Under the pieces are notes generated by a model that ran no database searches, was not told where the DNA came from, and was given only the letters and a program-made list of their open reading frames with translations. A DNA stretch of 64,000 bases from sequence record NC_070998.1. The stretch is one strand, 5' to 3'. The position numbers and the translations under genes are program-made. Below, piece after piece: positions 5,947 through 56,497 of the stretch (positions within the stretch are counted from its first letter, which is position 1; each line of letters opens with the position of its first letter).

Positions 5947-5978
5947 CTATATTTTTTCAAGCAGATATTATTAAGTTG
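5947..5978 (+). promoter_or_regulatory. putative early promoter
   Basis: CTATATTTTTTCAAGCAGATATTATTAAGTTG matches repeated motif. Confidence 0.55.
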
Positions 5979-6982: not shown

Positions 6983-9241
6983 ATGTCAAAAGGTTCCGTA
7001 ATGAAAACGAATCTTGATCCTGCCAAATGTCCTTTCTGCGGTTCGCCCGAAGTGGAGTACCCAACACCCCGGACTGTTTATTCTTGCGGGACTAATGATT
7101 ATGACGGCCGCCCTGAATCAGCAATGCAATCTGAAACGTGTAAAGAGCGTGTGCTAGCTAAACCTGTTCACACTACCCAGTTTGAAAAGAAATTTGGTAT
7201 TAAGGAAGAAGATTGCAAAAACAAATATGAGTTGTGGTATTTCAAAACACTTCTTTCTTTACTGGAAGATGGAACAGTTAAAGACGACCGGACCAATACA
7301 GGAACACGTTCTATTCCGTTCCATACATATCAACACGATCTTCGTGAATCTTATCCGCTGATGAAGTCTCGTTATCTGGATCCCTTTAATCCTATTAAAG
7401 AAATGATCTGGATGTTGAGTGGTTCTTCTAATGTTAAACCTCTTCAGGAAATGGGAGTTCCTTTCTGGAATAGTTTTGCTGATGAAGACGGAGAGTTGGG
7501 TCCTGTTTACGGTGTACAGTGGCGTCATTGGAAAACCCCTGATGGTGAAGAAGTAGATCAAATCCAATATGTTCTTGACCTACTGGAGAATGAACCTACG
7601 TCTCGTCGTATGGTGGTTAGTTGCTGGAATCCATCCTTTATCCCAGTCGCTAAAACCGCACCGAAAGATAATCCGAAGCTAGGTAAGATGAGCTTGACAC
7701 CTTGCTTTGTAGCAGGAACACCTGTTTTAACACCACATGGCTATGTTGATATAGAAAGTTTAAACGCAGGAGATTTGGTTGTAACGGATAAGGGTAATAT
7801 ACAGCCGATAAATCATAAATGGATAACTGAATACACTGGCGAAATTATAGGCCTTTCTATGGTCTACCAGACAGAATTAATACAGTGTACACCAAACCAC
7901 CCGTTTCTAATTAAAAATAAAGGGTATATTGAATGTAAGGATATCAAGATTGGTGATAAACTTGGGATATTAAGGCCTAAATTTTCCGATCGAGTGCATG
8001 TAAACAACTGGTCAGTGTTAAATAGTTATCACCAAACCATTTCACATAGCGAGGAACTTAATAAAAACGATTATTATTTTCTTGGGTATTTTTTAGGAAA
8101 TGGATGGGTGTCACAAACACAACCTAGAGTTAGTGTGGCAATACCAAACAGTAAAGTGGAATGGTTGTTACCTAAAATAAGAAATTCGATAAAATTGATT
8201 CATAAACCAGGCATTTCCCCTAACGTAGCTACATACGCTACAAAATCGCAAAAGTGGTGGGGGTTGTTAAAAGAATTTGGTCATGGTGCTAGTAACAAAA
8301 AGATACCTGAATGGATTTTTACTTCCCCTATCGAGTTTGTAGAGGAGTTTATTAAAGGGTATAAAGACGCCGATGGGTTCGAATCTAAAAATAGAAAAGT
8401 GATCTCTTATACAACCACTTCTAGATCTTTAGCCTATGGACTTCAAAGATTATACGCTGGTTTAGGTAGACACGCGGCGGTATACAAACAAAAAAGACCT
8501 ACAACAACTATTATCGAGGGAAGGTGTGTAAATCAAAAAGACACTTACATGGTAAACCTTAGATCAAGAACAGTACATGATGTGGAAATGGATGGAGACT
8601 ACCTATGGGTCCCAGTGAACGGTATAGGGAAAAAGACAACTTCATGTTTGGTTTACAACTACGACGTAGGTCATGACCACACTTACGTGGTGCATAACTA
8701 CGCCACACACAACTGCCATTTTTCATTTGTTCTCACAGCAACACCAATGAACTTTGGTGACAGACTAAACTATTTCAAACATTCTCACCCAACCATCTAC
8801 AGTAATCTTTATCCAATCTCTGGTAAAGGTTGGACCGAGCGTGCTGAAGAAGCAATGAATCATCGCAATGTTCCTAAGTTCTATCTTGATCTTAGTTTCA
8901 TCATGCGGTCTAATGACTTTATTCTTGGTAACCCCGCTAACCTGAATGAATACGCTGCTCTATGTATGATGTTTGCACAACAACGCAACATGATCGCGCG
9001 CTATGTCAATTACACTGGTATTGATGTTCATATCTACTCTAACCACATTGCTGGTGCTAGAGAACAGATTGATTATGTCAAGAAACATCCGGAGATCTTT
9101 ACTGATGAACCAGCTAAAATACATATTGGTTTGAACGGGAAACCTAATACAATATTTGAATACACTGTTGATCATTTTGTAGTCCAAGATTACCATCGTG
9201 AAAATACTGGACCGGTAATTCGTTTCCCAATTGCTGTATAA
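6983..9241 (+). CDS. thyA: thymidylate synthase precursor with intein and N-terminal Cys-rich domain
   Basis: DRTNTGT, GPVYGVQWR, SRRMVV, P/CH, MRSND, GNPAN, DVHIYSNH motifs; interrupted by 337-aa intein. Confidence 0.95.
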   Translation: MSKGSVMKTNLDPAKCPFCGSPEVEYPTPRTVYSCGTNDYDGRPESAMQSETCKERVLAKPVHTTQFEKKFGIKEEDCKNKYELWYFKTLLSLLEDGTVKDDRTNTGTRSIPFHTYQHDLRESYPLMKSRYLDPFNPIKEMIWMLSGSSNVKPLQEMGVPFWNSFADEDGELGPVYGVQWRHWKTPDGEEVDQIQYVLDLLENEPTSRRMVVSCWNPSFIPVAKTAPKDNPKLGKMSLTPCFVAGTPVLTPHGYVDIESLNAGDLVVTDKGNIQPINHKWITEYTGEIIGLSMVYQTELIQCTPNHPFLIKNKGYIECKDIKIGDKLGILRPKFSDRVHVNNWSVLNSYHQTISHSEELNKNDYYFLGYFLGNGWVSQTQPRVSVAIPNSKVEWLLPKIRNSIKLIHKPGISPNVATYATKSQKWWGLLKEFGHGASNKKIPEWIFTSPIEFVEEFIKGYKDADGFESKNRKVISYTTTSRSLAYGLQRLYAGLGRHAAVYKQKRPTTTIIEGRCVNQKDTYMVNLRSRTVHDVEMDGDYLWVPVNGIGKKTTSCLVYNYDVGHDHTYVVHNYATHNCHFSFVLTATPMNFGDRLNYFKHSHPTIYSNLYPISGKGWTERAEEAMNHRNVPKFYLDLSFIMRSNDFILGNPANLNEYAALCMMFAQQRNMIARYVNYTGIDVHIYSNHIAGAREQIDYVKKHPEIFTDEPAKIHIGLNGKPNTIFEYTVDHFVVQDYHRENTGPVIRFPIAV
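7703..8713 (+). mobile_element. intein with LAGLIDADG homing endonuclease domain
   Basis: block A CFVAGTPV, block B CTPNHPF, block C LGYFLGNG, block E IKGYKDADG, block F/G VYNYDV..THN; +1 residue Cys. Confidence 0.95.
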
Positions 9242-11192: not shown

Positions 11193-11726
11193 ATGACTTG
11201 TCAAGTATCAATGATTTTTGCTAGCGATAAAAATTCAGGAATAGGCCTCAATAATAAACTACCATGGGATTCAATCCCAGAAGACATGGAATGGTTTAAA
11301 CAATGCACAATGGGTAAGACTGTTGTAATGGGTAGAAAGACTTGGGAATCTCTTCCAGAGCGTTTTAGGCCACTTCCTGGGCGCACTAACGTTGTCTTAA
11401 CTTCTAATACTGATAACTTTATTGATGCAATTGTTTCACCATCGATAGGAGCAGTGTTGGAACGATTTAAAGATGAGAAAGAAATTGTTGTAATCGGCGG
11501 TGGTGAAGTCTACAAGTCTTTTGCTCCATATGTCACAAGAGTCTATCAAACCAACATTCTTGACAAACACCGCGTTGATGTTAGAATGGAAGTTGAATGT
11601 GACGATTGGGACCTTATTTATTTTGACGCCAGGAAAGGCCAAGATGGTCCCATATTCCAAATATTCGAAAAAATAGATGGAAATGAAGAATTAATAATTA
11701 GTGTTGAAAATATCTTACCTCTATAA
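11193..11726 (+). CDS. folA: dihydrofolate reductase
   Basis: IGLNNKLPW, EDMEWFK, VVMGRKTWES, RPLPGRTN, VIGGGEVY. Confidence 0.95.
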   Translation: MTCQVSMIFASDKNSGIGLNNKLPWDSIPEDMEWFKQCTMGKTVVMGRKTWESLPERFRPLPGRTNVVLTSNTDNFIDAIVSPSIGAVLERFKDEKEIVVIGGGEVYKSFAPYVTRVYQTNILDKHRVDVRMEVECDDWDLIYFDARKGQDGPIFQIFEKIDGNEELIISVENILPL

Positions 11727-11752
11727 TTTTTCAAACATATATTATTAAGATG
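11721..11752 (+). promoter_or_regulatory. putative early promoter
   Basis: CTATAATTTTTCAAACATATATTATTAAGATG overlapping the DHFR stop, upstream of clpP-groEL. Confidence 0.6.
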
Positions 11753-11784
11753 GATAAGTAGAAAAGGTATTTAGGAGAACCCCG

Positions 11785-12516
11785 ATGAGTGAAGAACAAA
11801 AAGTAGAAGAAGTTGTTGAAAGACCCACCTGGGACACATATTCACTATGTGGTGAGATAGAATACTCCGCGATCGATAACTTCGCTAGTTTATTGCGTTC
11901 TAAGGATCCCGGCACGCCAATGATTTTGCTAGTTAGATCTGGTGGTGGCTCTAGTAACCCAGCAAACACTATCACAGATATGATCAACGCCCAACATTGC
12001 AAAAAAGTGATTATTGGTTTGTCTATGGTTTGTTCCGCAGCGTGGGTTCTGTTTACCCCTTTGCAAGCATTAAGACTTTGTTACAGGACATCATTGTTCA
12101 TGCAGCATCAATCAACGTACAGTATTAAAGGTGTTTCGCGGGACGAAGCTAATATGATAATGGGTGTTCAAAACCACCTCACCTACACTATGGACGATAT
12201 GTTTAAGGAAGGGTTTGGGATAGACGATAAAACTCTACAAAAACTTATTGCTAAAGAAAGTTGGATTTCTTCCTCCGAAGCTTTGTTCTTTGGTGACCGC
12301 GGTATAGTTGACGGCATTATTGCTAAGGAGTTAAGAACTGAAGATTACATCGTTCTTACCAGGGACGGTTATAAGCGTATCGATGTTAATGAAGTTTATA
12401 ACTCTTATCTCCTTAGACGTCATCCCCTTCTGACGGAAGAAGAGTGTGAAGAGTTTGGACTCAAACAACATGTTCCAGTTCCTGTTGGATTGAAGTTCCC
12501 TAAAGCTTTTGCTTAA
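11785..12516 (+). CDS. clpP: ClpP-like serine protease
   Basis: SGGG oxyanion region, VCSAA (Ser), MQHQ (His), KESWISSSEA aligning to RDRFLSAPEA. Confidence 0.7.
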   Translation: MSEEQKVEEVVERPTWDTYSLCGEIEYSAIDNFASLLRSKDPGTPMILLVRSGGGSSNPANTITDMINAQHCKKVIIGLSMVCSAAWVLFTPLQALRLCYRTSLFMQHQSTYSIKGVSRDEANMIMGVQNHLTYTMDDMFKEGFGIDDKTLQKLIAKESWISSSEALFFGDRGIVDGIIAKELRTEDYIVLTRDGYKRIDVNEVYNSYLLRRHPLLTEEECEEFGLKQHVPVPVGLKFPKAFA

Positions 12517-12568
12517 TGTTTAACACAAGTCTAGTAATGTAAACCTATAATTAAATAAGGATCTGATC

Positions 12569-14122
12569 ATGTCTATTTTGACCGAACAAACCTTTACCAA
12601 TAAAGAAGAAACCCGCGCCATTATTGATGAAGTTATCCAAATGGCGTATGAAAGCGTTTGTTCCACCATGGGTCCAAACGGAAGTTATGCGGTTATTAAT
12701 CAGCTCAATAAACCGAAACTCACTAAAGATGGCGTGTCGGTAGCTAAGGCACTGGACTTCAACGAAGCACGCCGAAACCTCATCGCTGATGTGATCAAAG
12801 AACCTTCTATCAAAACTGATCTGGAGGTCGGTGACGGCACTACTACTACTGTATTCCTGACTTACAATCTTTACAAAATGTTTAAAAACAAAATGGGTTT
12901 CACCCAAACTCGTTTTGTTGACAAACTGGTTAAAGAAGCGATAGAAGAGATCAACAAGCTGATTATCCCAGGTGATATTCATTCTGACACATTCCGCAAG
13001 ATGTTGATGACAACATCTAACTACGAATCAGAAATCGTAGATAAGGTACTGGAGATTTATCAAACCCACGATAATCCCAATATCCGCTTGGAAAACTGTC
13101 CGACGCTTCCTGCTGATCAGATTGTGGAAACCAAGGAAATTCTGTTCCCGGGGAATTATGGTAAAGATATCTTTACTCCTCCACATCCTGGTATTTTGAA
13201 TGTTCCTCTGGAAGCTAAGTGCCCAGTAGTGATCATTGATGGTGTTGTTAATATGATTGTTGTTAACAAGCTTATCGGAGCGTTCACTGGTTATAATAAC
13301 GTAGTAATGTTTGCACGTAGTTTTGAACCTATCGCGTTGAGTGCTTTGCAATCTATTAATGGTCAAGGTGCCACTAAGTTCATCCCGTTCAAAGTAGAAG
13401 CTGCTGGTTCTCTTGGTAGTAATATTCTATCTGAACTGGGTAAGCTAGTAGGTGTTACTCCTGTTGTGGGTGTAGAAGAGATCTATGAACGTGAAACGGT
13501 AGAATTGGCCAGATGTTCATTTATCCTCACTACGCAAGGTGTTATGTTCACTAAGGAAGATCCGGTTATTAGCAAAGTAGCCGAAGAGATCCTTTCTGAA
13601 CTTGTACCTCGTTATGAGAAAATGAATGCCATTGACAAGCAAACACCAATCGGATTGTCTTTGTTTACTCGTATCTCTCGTCTTCGTGCTAATAATGTAA
13701 CTATTAAAGTTACTGGTACAGTTCCGTCGGAAGCTACTGAACGTTACTACCGTTATGAAGATGCAATGAAAGCAGCCAAGACCGGCTCCATTTATGGTAT
13801 CCTTCCTGGTATTGGTTGGGGTTATCTAACTGTTGCGCAAACACTACTTTCCAAATATGGAGCGCTTGAACTAACCCAAGAGCAACAAGATTTGGTGTTG
13901 GATTTCACTTCAGTGTTAACCCAACCGTATCTTCATCTCACTGGGAACACTTTGGAGAACATCAAGTTCCTTGATTTGGTAACAGGTTTGGAAGAAGAAG
14001 TCCCAACTGGTGTGTTTGATAACGCGGCGGCAACAATGACAGCTTTGACTGGTGGCTGGGCTTGCTGTAAGACTCTTGCTAAGATTAACAATATCATGGG
14101 TCGTTCTAGCAAATCCTATTAA
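12569..14122 (+). CDS. groEL: phage chaperonin, GroEL-like
   Basis: TMGPNG, TKDGVSVAK, GDGTTT, RYEDA, PGIG motifs; 517 aa; no GGM tail. Confidence 0.9.
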   Translation: MSILTEQTFTNKEETRAIIDEVIQMAYESVCSTMGPNGSYAVINQLNKPKLTKDGVSVAKALDFNEARRNLIADVIKEPSIKTDLEVGDGTTTTVFLTYNLYKMFKNKMGFTQTRFVDKLVKEAIEEINKLIIPGDIHSDTFRKMLMTTSNYESEIVDKVLEIYQTHDNPNIRLENCPTLPADQIVETKEILFPGNYGKDIFTPPHPGILNVPLEAKCPVVIIDGVVNMIVVNKLIGAFTGYNNVVMFARSFEPIALSALQSINGQGATKFIPFKVEAAGSLGSNILSELGKLVGVTPVVGVEEIYERETVELARCSFILTTQGVMFTKEDPVISKVAEEILSELVPRYEKMNAIDKQTPIGLSLFTRISRLRANNVTIKVTGTVPSEATERYYRYEDAMKAAKTGSIYGILPGIGWGYLTVAQTLLSKYGALELTQEQQDLVLDFTSVLTQPYLHLTGNTLENIKFLDLVTGLEEEVPTGVFDNAAATMTALTGGWACCKTLAKINNIMGRSSKSY

Positions 14123-14195
14123 TATATTTGCGGGGTTTGGTGGGGGAGTTGAATCTCCCCCATCTTTTTTAACATATTTATTTTTGGTAAAACAT

Positions 14196-14447
14196 ATGAA
14201 TATAGCGGCTCAACGCAGGGCAAACCTGCTAAGTAACACTAATCTGGTATTAATGTTTAGTTTGGTTTTTATAGCAGGTATAATGACCTTAGTTCACAGC
14301 AACCAATTCGGTTTATTTTTGTTTGTTTTTACTTTAATTAGAGTTGGCCAAATGTTATTTATGGACGTCAAATGGGTAGTAAGTCCAATAACAATGATGA
14401 TCATTGTCTGTGTATCAATAGGAAACGTAATAGGGTATCTCATTTAA
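14196..14447 (+). CDS. membrane protein
   Basis: three hydrophobic segments; start placed at ATG 14196 after hairpin 14139-14163. Confidence 0.55.
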   Translation: MNIAAQRRANLLSNTNLVLMFSLVFIAGIMTLVHSNQFGLFLFVFTLIRVGQMLFMDVKWVVSPITMMIIVCVSIGNVIGYLI

Positions 14448-52339: not shown

Positions 52340-53209
52340 ATGACTAACACTAACAAAGAGGTGTTTGGGTTAAAAACCATCCAATCACTTTTTCGGGAAG
52401 TTGGCCTCTATGGAGGGCGCATCGACGCCCTCTTTGGGACTGGTTGTGTAAACGCTATGCATAGTCTCGTTAAACACGCTAATCCGAACTACAACCCGAT
52501 TGTAGCTGTTCCTACTTACTTGGCTAGTGATGTATTTAAGTGGGTTCAAGAATACCTTGTACGAGCTGGTAAGGTGCCTGCTGAGTTTAAGGTAGATGGA
52601 AAGTGGGGACCTGCTAGTAAAGGTGAATTAGAGAAGCTTTGTAACATCTACGCTCAGGATAATAACCTACCCCAATACAGCTATGCGTGGACAGCTCACA
52701 AGAATCTAACTCCTGAAGTAATTAAGAAAGTTGAAGACTGGATGGTTAAATGGGGTAAACCTCTTGATCATGTAAGTTACTTGTTTAGTTGTTTTGCTTT
52801 GGAGACAGGAAGGACTTTTGATCCAGCGGCTTTGAACAAACATAGTAAAGCTCGGGGTCTCATTCAGTTTATGCCAAATGGTTCCATGAAGGATTTAGGT
52901 GTAACTGATAGTCAACTTAAAGTGATGACTGTATTTGAACAACTTGACTGGGTTTTCAAATACTTTGAAAAGTACAGCTATATCAAGAAGTGTAACTATC
53001 TTGAAGATTATTACCTCTCTATTTTCTACCCAGCTCATGTCGGTAAAGATCCCAACTTGGTAGTTGGGACCAAGGGAACTAAACTCTACGAGCAAAACTC
53101 TGGGTTTGATGCTGAGAAGAAAGGTTTCTACACCGTTGGTGATATTGCTTCAGCGATTACTACTTTCTATTGGGAAGGTATGGATCCAAAACTTCGTCTT
53201 GCTAAATAA
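52340..53209 (+). CDS. modular endolysin: N-terminal peptidoglycan-binding repeats + lytic transglycosylase (EL188-like)
   Basis: IDALFG and VDGKWG PG-binding motifs; ETG..FDP, GLIQF, EQL.WV..YF catalytic domain. Confidence 0.85.
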   Translation: MTNTNKEVFGLKTIQSLFREVGLYGGRIDALFGTGCVNAMHSLVKHANPNYNPIVAVPTYLASDVFKWVQEYLVRAGKVPAEFKVDGKWGPASKGELEKLCNIYAQDNNLPQYSYAWTAHKNLTPEVIKKVEDWMVKWGKPLDHVSYLFSCFALETGRTFDPAALNKHSKARGLIQFMPNGSMKDLGVTDSQLKVMTVFEQLDWVFKYFEKYSYIKKCNYLEDYYLSIFYPAHVGKDPNLVVGTKGTKLYEQNSGFDAEKKGFYTVGDIASAITTFYWEGMDPKLRLAK

Positions 53210-54903: not shown

Positions 54904-55646
54904 TCGATTTCGATAAGCTGAAGAAAGATACAGGGCGGATTAATTCCGCCCTTAAAGTCATGCCTGATAACACTGTCGTTGCTCTTAAGAAGATGACTTG
55001 TTACATTCCTAAGCGTTTCGAACAATCTGGTTTGGCAGAAATTGGTGATTCGGTAAATACAATTATGGCAGTTGGGGTAGTGGTTGATGACTACTACTCT
55101 TGCTTTGGTTCTCTGACACGGTTTAGTATGAAACCTGGCGATACTTCTGAGGAAGTTATTAAGGGTGATCGTTACTATGTCATGCATTTTGAACCAGGTG
55201 ATATTGTTATTGAAAACATCTTTGTTCCGCAGGATGCTAACCTGATCTATTATTTCTATTTGGAATTCATCAAGTATGCTCGTTATCCATGGTATATGGA
55301 TGAAAACGTACTATTGAATATCTTTGATGAAAGTTCTTATTTTGCAGGTAAGAAAGTAGGTAGTTCTGCTCAGGTACTAAGAGTGTTGTTTTCTTTAACA
55401 ATGCGCGATCCTGTCAACTTGGATATACCGTTTCGTTATTCCCCGCAGTTTAAAGATCTCTCCGTGAAACCTCGCATCATCGGCATTAACAACCCAGGTC
55501 AACTACTTAATAGCACATTTAGTAGATTGTCTTCAGGTTATATGTCGGATAACATTGTCAGTGGTATTCTTAACCCAGATACTCAGATGACAACGTTGGA
55601 AGAGGTGATCCGTGGTCTTCCTGAAGAGTATGGAGAGTTACAATGA
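54900..55646 (+). CDS. conserved head-region protein
   Basis: 248 aa immediately upstream of prohead protease. Confidence 0.6.
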   Translation: MIDFDKLKKDTGRINSALKVMPDNTVVALKKMTCYIPKRFEQSGLAEIGDSVNTIMAVGVVVDDYYSCFGSLTRFSMKPGDTSEEVIKGDRYYVMHFEPGDIVIENIFVPQDANLIYYFYLEFIKYARYPWYMDENVLLNIFDESSYFAGKKVGSSAQVLRVLFSLTMRDPVNLDIPFRYSPQFKDLSVKPRIIGINNPGQLLNSTFSRLSSGYMSDNIVSGILNPDTQMTTLEEVIRGLPEEYGELQ

Positions 55647-56497
55647 GTGAAATTAGTTTTGGGAATATCGTTCTGGCTAATAGTGGTAAGAAAGGTGTTC
55701 TCAAACCAAACTCAGATGGTATTTACCGTTTGAATGCTGGTGGGTTCAACATCCCCAACCATGCCGGTATTGTTTATCCTGCTAACAAATACATTCGCGA
55801 ACAGATGGAAGCTAATAGCGACCTTAACCGTCGTGTTAGTATGGGTTATTGCTTGATGGAACAAGAACATCCACAACCTTTCTTTTATGTAGAAGAGAAT
55901 GGGGTTCGATATCGTAAAGCAATGACTTCTGTACTTGAATGGATTAATCGTCTTCGTAGTTACGATCACGATAATGTCTGTGGACTTATCAGTAAGATCA
56001 TCTTCCGTCCTGAGAATCCTAACAATCTTTCTGCCCCTATTTGGAATGAGATCGATTGTAAGCCATTTGGTGCTAAAGGCGAATGGTTCCGTGAATCTCT
56101 GGAAACTCCGGAACATAACACTGCTGTAAGTATCCGTACACAGATTGATCCGTTTAAACCTGGTGAAACACGCAAGGAAGTCGTTTACTGGTCGGGTTAT
56201 GATGTAGTTTCAGAACCTGGGATGTTACACGCCAATAAACATCTCTCAGCTGGCTGTGAATCTATGTTATCTGATTTTAATCTGGGTATGGATAACGTCA
56301 TTAAGTTTAAAGCTTCTGATGTTATTGAACAGATTGACAACCAACTTGCTCTTGCTGCTAATAGTGACTTTGAACTTCAACGTGTTGGCGGGATGGAATC
56401 ACTTAACATGATGAAGGACATGGTAGAAGCTGTTAAGCGCAGTTACAAGCCTGGTGACACAACTCGTGTTGGTGTTTCCTTTGTAGACGTATTCTAA
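55643..56497 (+). CDS. prohead maturation protease (phiKZ gp175 / T4 gp21 type)
   Basis: EQEHP (His), PFG.KG, VSIRT (Ser), YDVVSEPG (Asp); C-terminal AGCES and GGMES candidate autocleavage sites. Confidence 0.85.
   Translation: MSEISFGNIVLANSGKKGVLKPNSDGIYRLNAGGFNIPNHAGIVYPANKYIREQMEANSDLNRRVSMGYCLMEQEHPQPFFYVEENGVRYRKAMTSVLEWINRLRSYDHDNVCGLISKIIFRPENPNNLSAPIWNEIDCKPFGAKGEWFRESLETPEHNTAVSIRTQIDPFKPGETRKEVVYWSGYDVVSEPGMLHANKHLSAGCESMLSDFNLGMDNVIKFKASDVIEQIDNQLALAANSDFELQRVGGMESLNMMKDMVEAVKRSYKPGDTTRVGVSFVDVF

Follow-up and report, generated by a model that had tools for sequence, protein, structure and literature searches.

The chaperonins of the OBP/EL type, which are encoded by phages, have been recognised as a group only recently. 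The described members, OBP gp246 (PDB 6HDD), EL gp146 (PDB 6TMT and others) and AR9 gp228, are GroEL-like, ATP-dependent proteins of phages that have no co-chaperonin gene; OBP gp246 needs no co-chaperonin and consists of one ring of seven subunits, and the chaperonin of EL keeps the EL endolysin from aggregating (PMC9598537). Here we analyze a unit made of a ClpP-like protease gene and a GroEL-like chaperonin gene in Aeromonas jumbo phage PS1 (MN032614.2 / NC_070998.1), located at positions 11,721 to 14,164 of a stretch of 64,000 nucleotides that we call the window. Bases 11700-14200 of the window are 100% identical to PS1, phage PS2 being essentially identical, and the window is the last 64 kb of the PS1 record (237,367 bp in total), its position 1 corresponding to record position 173368. 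The genus of PS1, Ferozepurvirus, was assigned to the nucleus-forming family Chimalliviridae in a recent paper (PMC12837969). An earlier note on this DNA had read the two genes as a fold-or-degrade module under one early-type promoter. Our results favor a looser arrangement, and we consider it rather probable that the unit encodes two co-expressed early proteostasis factors that are inherited together, that are separable, and that are not obligatorily coupled.

Both genes were annotated in GenBank before this analysis, as 'hypothetical protein, note: putative Clp protease' and 'putative chaperonin GroEL', respectively. In the literature searched, no phage ClpP-chaperonin pair is described as a system, in agreement with the earlier note; one paper, on phage Z90, lists neighbouring clpP and groEL open reading frames (ORFs) and groups them as 'virion assembly-related'. 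The OBP locus, gp244 (putative Clp protease subunit)-gp245-gp246, belongs to the same clade and the same collinear block as that of PS1 and, like it, has an OBP-type early promoter motif upstream. The ClpP-like proteins of the two phages are 33.5% identical and have a C-terminal TRxGxK motif in common, and the chaperonins are 49.6% identical. Unlike PS1, OBP has an extra gene, for a 189-aa protein of the family phrog_12584, between protease and chaperonin; the third residue of the catalytic triad is Asp in the OBP protease and Glu in that of PS1, and the PS1 protease, unlike that of OBP, has a further acidic C-terminal tail of ~25 residues. We considered whether this tail is the remnant of a fused phrog_12584 protein and rejected the idea, as there is no phrog_12584 match in the PS1 protease or anywhere in PS1, CF8, D3 and AhC3_1. 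EL and its relatives, in contrast to PS1, are without a ClpP-like gene.

The unit opens with an early-type promoter motif (11721-11754, + strand), which overlaps the stop codon of the dihydrofolate reductase (DHFR) gene and agrees at nearly every position with the predicted consensus of the early promoters of OBP and N1M2 (PMC7058600). It is followed on the same strand by the gene for a ClpP-family (S14) serine protease homologue of 243 aa (PS1_0198, 11785-12516; Pfam PF00574), a 52-nt intercistronic spacer with a ribosome-binding site (12517-12568), the gene for a GroEL-like phage chaperonin of 517 aa and OBP gp246 type (PS1_0199, 12569-14122; phrog_5725, 6HDD), and an intrinsic-terminator-like hairpin of 10 pairs, seven of them G-C, with a T run behind it (14139-14164), where the unit ends. 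The ORFs, the Pfam and PHROG matches and the hairpin place the series of elements where the earlier note had put them, and its reading of the promoter as early-type agrees with the consensus. The 20-nt core of the motif has eight copies in the window, all intergenic and on the + strand, against 0.06 expected from shuffles. These copies, at window positions 5954, 11728, 15457, 16990, 57224, 58954, 60461 and 62660, together map the predicted early transcription units of this arm of the PS1 genome. The cores often have CTATAATTT just before them, and looser promoter-like copies lie upstream of 2304, 31238 and 32461.

Between the two genes (12517-12568) there is neither a terminator nor a promoter motif. 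A second, internal early promoter before groEL was rejected as a candidate: the spacer has eight mismatches to the 20-nt core by eye, and a pattern scan gave no hit in it. In most of the relatives examined, the promoter motif lies 45-60 nt upstream of clpP or of a small ORF in front of it, and in none of the relatives does it lie between clpP and groEL. An early consensus upstream and an intrinsic terminator downstream, the two marks of an early transcription unit, are both present in PS1 by sequence. We infer co-transcription of clpP and groEL from the sequence together with the comparative layout, which supports an early bicistronic unit. PS1-like DNA is present in wastewater, freshwater and biofilm metagenomes (14 studies). 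Contigs of two metatranscriptomic libraries cover the PS1 region and bridge the clpP-groEL junction, and one near-identical contig from a cDNA library covers window positions 11859-13213; because these are contigs only, and DNA carry-over is possible, the junction-bridging contigs are no proof of a single transcript, its ends or its strand. Just after the terminator lies an 83-codon ORF (14196-14447, + strand, with ATG at 14196) for a very hydrophobic small protein, which has no Pfam or PHROG match; it is unannotated in PS1, but the related phage pAEv1810 has an annotated ORF of equal length in the corresponding place (pAEv1810_224).

The linkage of the two genes is conserved far beyond PS1. 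A clpP-like gene lies directly upstream of groEL in PS1, PS2, ACP1, AVP1, AhC3_1, ZPAH34, AerS_266, CF8, LAh10, D3, D6 and D9; one small gene separates the two in OBP, N1M2, Kc263, SXP01, Yubaba and Sureiya, and two do so in AH04. When IMG/VR was searched with the chaperonin alignment, the same arrangement was seen in three complete genomes, and it is also present in two Logan contigs; a scan of IMG/VR with the single PS1 chaperonin protein gave no match. However, the conservation is not confined to the pair. In all clpP-groEL phages the neighborhood is collinear, with genes for thymidylate synthase, an acetyltransferase, DHFR, ClpP, GroEL, a 92-aa protein and thymidine kinase. Because the whole block is collinear, the adjacency of clpP and groEL is expected from descent alone, and may not reflect selection.

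The fate of the protease gene in relatives also bears on the relation between the two proteins. In a maximum-likelihood tree of the chaperonins, the OBP-like clade, with support of 100/100, contains 13 phages with an adjacent ClpP, and nested among the ClpP-bearing phages are three independent losses of the GroEL-adjacent ClpP, so that it has been lost at least three times. The chaperonins of the phages that lost it are retained, with no obvious change or visible acceleration. One case is pAEv1810, which belongs to the same genus as PS1, is its sister on the tree and has a GroEL 94% identical to that of PS1. Here clpP has undergone a natural deletion that leaves the last 27 codons (93% identical; locus L003:3347-3448), and the early promoter motif is kept, now standing before the clpP remnant and groEL. 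The genomes of pEt-SU and Survivor contain no ClpP at all, and in one IMG/VR genome the adjacent ClpP is gone and only a second ClpP paralog is kept, ~15 kb away. Relatives that are without the protease still have an unaltered chaperonin, which makes it improbable that the two proteins form one obligatory machine. Further out, the distant chaperonin-bearing chimalliviruses EL, Miami, RisingSun and pTD1 keep the order GroEL-small gene-thymidine kinase, and no ClpP was found in these four sampled lineages. The chaperonin is thus the constant element of the locus, and the protease a frequent but dispensable companion.

The second ClpP paralog itself points the same way. It occurs in Kc263 and in two metagenomic genomes (L112:3711-4325 for Kc263; L115:4001-4654; the IMG/VR genomes behind L035 and L037), carries the same C-terminal extension as the GroEL-adjacent proteins and matches the family profile through that extension. 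It heads an operon of small genes, divergent from the ribonucleotide reductase genes and ~14-15 kb from groEL. Here an extended protease is carried in a second place, unlinked to the chaperonin.

The protease is clearly a member of the ClpP family. PS1_0198 matches the Pfam profile CLP_protease (PF00574) with 48.7 bits (cut-off 20.2; E 1.1e-12) over profile positions 39-181 of 182, and is the single ClpP match of a profile search over the whole PS1 record. The earlier note had allowed for the case that the protein lacks the ClpP fold, and the structure prediction speaks against this. An AlphaFold2 (AF2) model built on an alignment of 84 sequences has a mean predicted local distance difference test score (pLDDT) of 89.2 and a predicted template modelling score (pTM) of 0.85; the 19 close homologues alone gave a pLDDT of 37.6. 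In Foldseek the model matches many ClpPs with probability 1.00 and TM scores of 0.73-0.84, and comparison with solved ClpPs by VIA gives Z values of 19-20 and root-mean-square deviations of 1.9-2.2 Å over 161-173 residues, with model residues 15-183 superposing on residues 25-193 of E. coli ClpP. We are confident that the modelled protein has the ClpP alpha/beta fold, including the long handle helix.

The catalytic residues are also in place. The putative triad is Ser84-His108-Glu158, and Ser84, His108 and the oxyanion Gly54-Gly55 are invariant in 84 of the 84 aligned sequences. In the third triad column, 69 sequences have Asp, 14 have Glu and one has Gly, Glu being the residue of the PS1 group and Asp that of nearly all others. 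Glu158 aligns with the Asp/Asn triad position of Listeria ClpP1 and is a conservative acidic variant. Given the conserved Ser, His and Gly-Gly and the acidic third residue, the protease looks catalytically competent and under selection.

Compared with canonical ClpP, as represented by the core of E. coli ClpXP and ClpAP (PDB 2FZS, 1YG6), PS1_0198 has the fold, the Ser-His pair, the oxyanion Gly-Gly, the handle helix and an acidic third residue in common, at 16-22% identity in structural alignments. It differs by an N-terminus shorter by ~10 residues, a 60-residue C-terminal extension and Glu in place of Asp. Canonical ClpP is partnered by ClpX or ClpA, whereas PS1 has no gene of the ClpX/ClpA type and its whole genome contains no AAA_2 (Clp-type ATPase) domain; ClpX and ClpA of the host would in principle be available. 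Canonical ClpP uses its N-terminal axial loops and helix A for the gating of the pore and for coupling to ClpX and ClpA. The canonical N-terminal axial-loop/helix-A signature (70% consensus) is absent in all 36 members of the phage clade, whose N-termini are shorter than the canonical one and without any conserved residue. Wastewater metatranscriptome contigs of PS1 relatives have a diverged sequence of similar length in place of the N-terminal part of clpP (window 11804-11959 and 12115-12187), while the flanking sequence stays ~90% identical; nowhere does the locus vary more than in this N-terminal region of the protease.

At the other end, the clade-specific extension continues for 60 residues beyond the canonical C-terminus and contains, in PS1_0198, the motif TRDGxKxIDV. 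Its T-R-x-G-x-K motif is invariant in 36 of 36 clade members and occurs in no canonical sequence of the 84-sequence alignment. The AF2 model folds the extension confidently into three beta strands and two short helices, and a look-up of the extension in the ESM Atlas returned only scores below 0.9, which are uninformative. PS1_0198 is a previously unstudied ClpP variant, or subfamily, that is predicted to lack the canonical gating loops and to carry a conserved C-terminal extension.

The chaperonin has much closer described relatives. PS1_0199 matches Cpn60_TCP1 of Pfam with 54.2 bits and phrog_5725 ('chaperonin groEL') over its full length (E 5.8e-104); it matches the cryo-EM entry of the OBP chaperonin, whose identity to it was measured with tblastn, over residues 5-517 (E 2.2e-154), and EL gp146 more distantly (E 1.3e-42). 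The nucleotide-binding motif GDGTTT (D89, G90, T91, T92 and T93) and D398 do not vary among 12 close homologues or among 49 from a broader set. The earlier note had seen no groES in the window, and this extends to the full record: a sequence search of all 237 kb of PS1 for Cpn10/GroES, which was positive in 12 of 14 control genomes, gave nothing at E <= 1, although an analogue of the gp31 kind without recognisable sequence similarity would escape such a search. By homology, PS1_0199 is an OBP gp246-type chaperonin, presumably single-ring and co-chaperonin-independent.

A further small protein is encoded next to this chaperonin in other genera. In OBP-like phages, a phrog_12584 protein of 100-190 aa is encoded directly upstream of groEL, which is the position of groES in bacteria (OBP_245, L004:2878-3447; also L007:3054-3446, L008:3157-3465 and L006:2893-3465). 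Survivor, without ClpP, keeps its phrog_12584 gene, and pEt-SU has a gene of the same size there that gives no phrog_12584 match. The phrog_12584 protein could be a chaperonin-associated factor.

Taken together, we propose that the PS1 unit encodes two cytoplasmic protein-quality-control factors that would be made together and act independently of each other. The ClpP-like protein would form a ClpP-like ring with a differently gated pore, and might break down peptides or unfolded proteins either with no canonical AAA+ partner at all or with one of another kind. The OBP-type chaperonin would hold and fold phage proteins. The two genes were probably brought together at the root of the OBP-like clade and have since been kept in a collinear block of early genes, in which the chaperonin would be the constant member of the unit, and ClpP and, in other genera, the small phrog_12584 protein would be dispensable.

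Several observations weigh against this proposal of two separable factors. The order promoter-ClpP-GroEL is kept in at least nine genera, down to ~41% GroEL identity, and each ClpP of the extended subfamily found so far sits in a chaperonin-bearing phage. One promoter motif, a 52-nt spacer and one terminator are also the layout that would be expected of a functional pair. Coaxial docking of the two proteins is sterically conceivable, because both the ClpP rings and the OBP chaperonin ring are 7-fold by homology. Moreover, the Glu-for-Asp replacement in the PS1 group could lower or alter the activity of the protease.

These points bear on three alternatives that couple the protease to a partner, the best of which is a loose fold-or-degrade triage. 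It would be tempting to suppose that the two proteins serve a shared early pool of non-native phage or host proteins without forming a stable complex, the chaperonin holding or refolding its clients, an open-pored ClpP-like ring degrading those that cannot be folded, and co-transcription setting the ratio of the two. In support of this idea, most of the relatives examined have kept a unit with a single early promoter and with no second promoter motif between its genes, the conserved catalytic residues place the protease under selection, the missing N-terminal gating loops are consistent with ATPase-independent degradation of unfolded chains, and the extended ClpP subfamily has been seen only in chaperonin-bearing phages. 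However, the protease has been lost at least three times, and the chaperonin was neither lost nor visibly accelerated; a second ClpP paralog resides in another operon, and common descent within a single clade would suffice to account for the co-occurrence. We regard triage as unlikely on balance, in its general form as well as in this detailed one. For the paired module of the earlier note, then, the operon-like layout stands, whereas the coupling is weakened by the ClpP losses, the collinearity and the paralog. The survey of co-occurrence that it had proposed comes out in the same mixed way, with a linkage conserved across many genera on one side and the collinear block, the repeated losses and the unlinked paralog on the other.

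A physical machine seems improbable to us. In it, a heptameric ClpP-like ring would dock coaxially on the single-ring chaperonin, perhaps via the C-terminal extension, and would serve it either as a proteolytic cap or, in place of GroES, as a lid, while the chaperonin took over the part of ClpX/ClpA; these details seem no more probable than the docking. The 7-to-7 match in symmetry that the homologous ClpP rings and the OBP gp246 ring suggest (PMC9598537) would suit such a machine, and so would a genome with neither GroES nor a Clp ATPase, the confidently folded, clade-specific TRDGxKxIDV extension and the conserved gene order. On the other hand, the OBP and EL chaperonins are reported to act in vitro without any partner (PMC9598537), a natural ClpP-less relative keeps a chaperonin that is 94% identical, OBP-like genera have another gene between protease and chaperonin, and the second paralog bears the same extension while being unlinked to GroEL.

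That the phage protein is aimed at the host instead, which the earlier note had also raised in proposing that it retargets host AAA+ unfoldases, is hardly probable either. Here the phage ClpP would couple or mix with host ClpX/ClpA or with host ClpP rings, and would retarget or poison host proteolysis, conceivably, though this is as doubtful as the coupling itself, to blunt host defence or to stabilise phage proteins. An early-type promoter would fit this role, as would a ClpP fold with the handle helix needed for ring contacts, and other chimalliviruses carry Clp-related accessories, for example an SspB-like adaptor (PMC10299810). Also, among solved structures the best sequence match of PS1_0198 is Listeria monocytogenes ClpP1 (PDB 4JCQ, 4JCR; E 1.9e-4 to 3.5e-4), a subunit of mixed rings whose third triad residue (Asn) is, like that of PS1 (Glu), not Asp. 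Listeria ClpP1 needs a ClpP2 partner ring for full activity. PS1 has one ClpP only, and most of its clade has Asp at the third position, unlike Listeria ClpP1. What makes retargeting of host ClpX/ClpA less likely is the absence of the canonical N-terminal axial-loop signature: the loop and helix-A residues for coupling to the ATPase are missing, and the N-terminus is unconserved in the clade. In addition, the Arg found before the catalytic Asp of canonical ClpPs is not kept in these proteins, the aromatic residues of the pocket appear on inspection to be replaced by aliphatic ones, and the hosts of these phages range over Aeromonas, Pseudomonas, Klebsiella, Erwinia and Shewanella.

The weakest reading, that the ClpP-like protein is a prohead protease which matures heads while the chaperonin beside it folds capsid proteins, draws on weak hits in PHROG to head maturation proteases of ClpP type (phrog_94, E 3.4e-9), on RefSeq labels of relatives and on the grouping in the Z90 paper. 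It can be dismissed as very improbable, since clpP follows an early-type promoter in the company of early genes for nucleotide metabolism, relatives without it are viable, and PS1 has a dedicated protease of phiKZ type elsewhere. The ClpP-family prohead proteases (PHROG 94, 1684 and others) are distant relatives of the ClpP fold that give weak matches, and the context of the PS1 clpP is early and metabolic, not a head module as it is for them. The dedicated head maturation protease of PS1, at 55643-56497 (+), matches phrog_3014 (E 1.4e-70), lies among virion structural genes, occurs in 201 phage records and is homologous to the gene that the RefSeq entry of phiKZ labels head maturation protease; in the original GenBank record it is labelled hypothetical.

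Two other genes of the window deserve mention. The gene at 52340-53209 (+) encodes 289 aa, the C-terminal half of which is lytic-transglycosylase or tail-lysozyme-like (phrog_4928, phrog_196), with no Pfam match for the protein. The earlier note had taken it for an endolysin of the EL188 type, the kind of client on which the EL chaperonin acts; this identity is not established, and the protein, labelled hypothetical in PS1, is plausibly a lytic-transglycosylase-like peptidoglycan hydrolase, a candidate endolysin or virion lysin. The thymidylate synthase gene (6983-9241, +) has ~750 codons and is far longer than usual.

In summary, the locus shows the chaperonin as a constant member of an early operon in the OBP-like clade, usually accompanied by a ClpP of the extended subfamily, and the pair of PS1 and pAEv1810 offers a natural ClpP knockout comparison. 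Should physical cooperation between the two proteins prove true, it would be a new architecture for ATP-dependent proteolysis, and if docking is true, the result would be a symmetry-matched machine or a proteolytic lid in place of GroES, and this would be the first chaperonin to serve as unfoldase or feeder of a ClpP-type chamber. If there is no cooperation, the locus would still provide a new ATPase-independent viral ClpP variant, together with a caution against deducing function from synteny in collinear jumbo-phage genomes.

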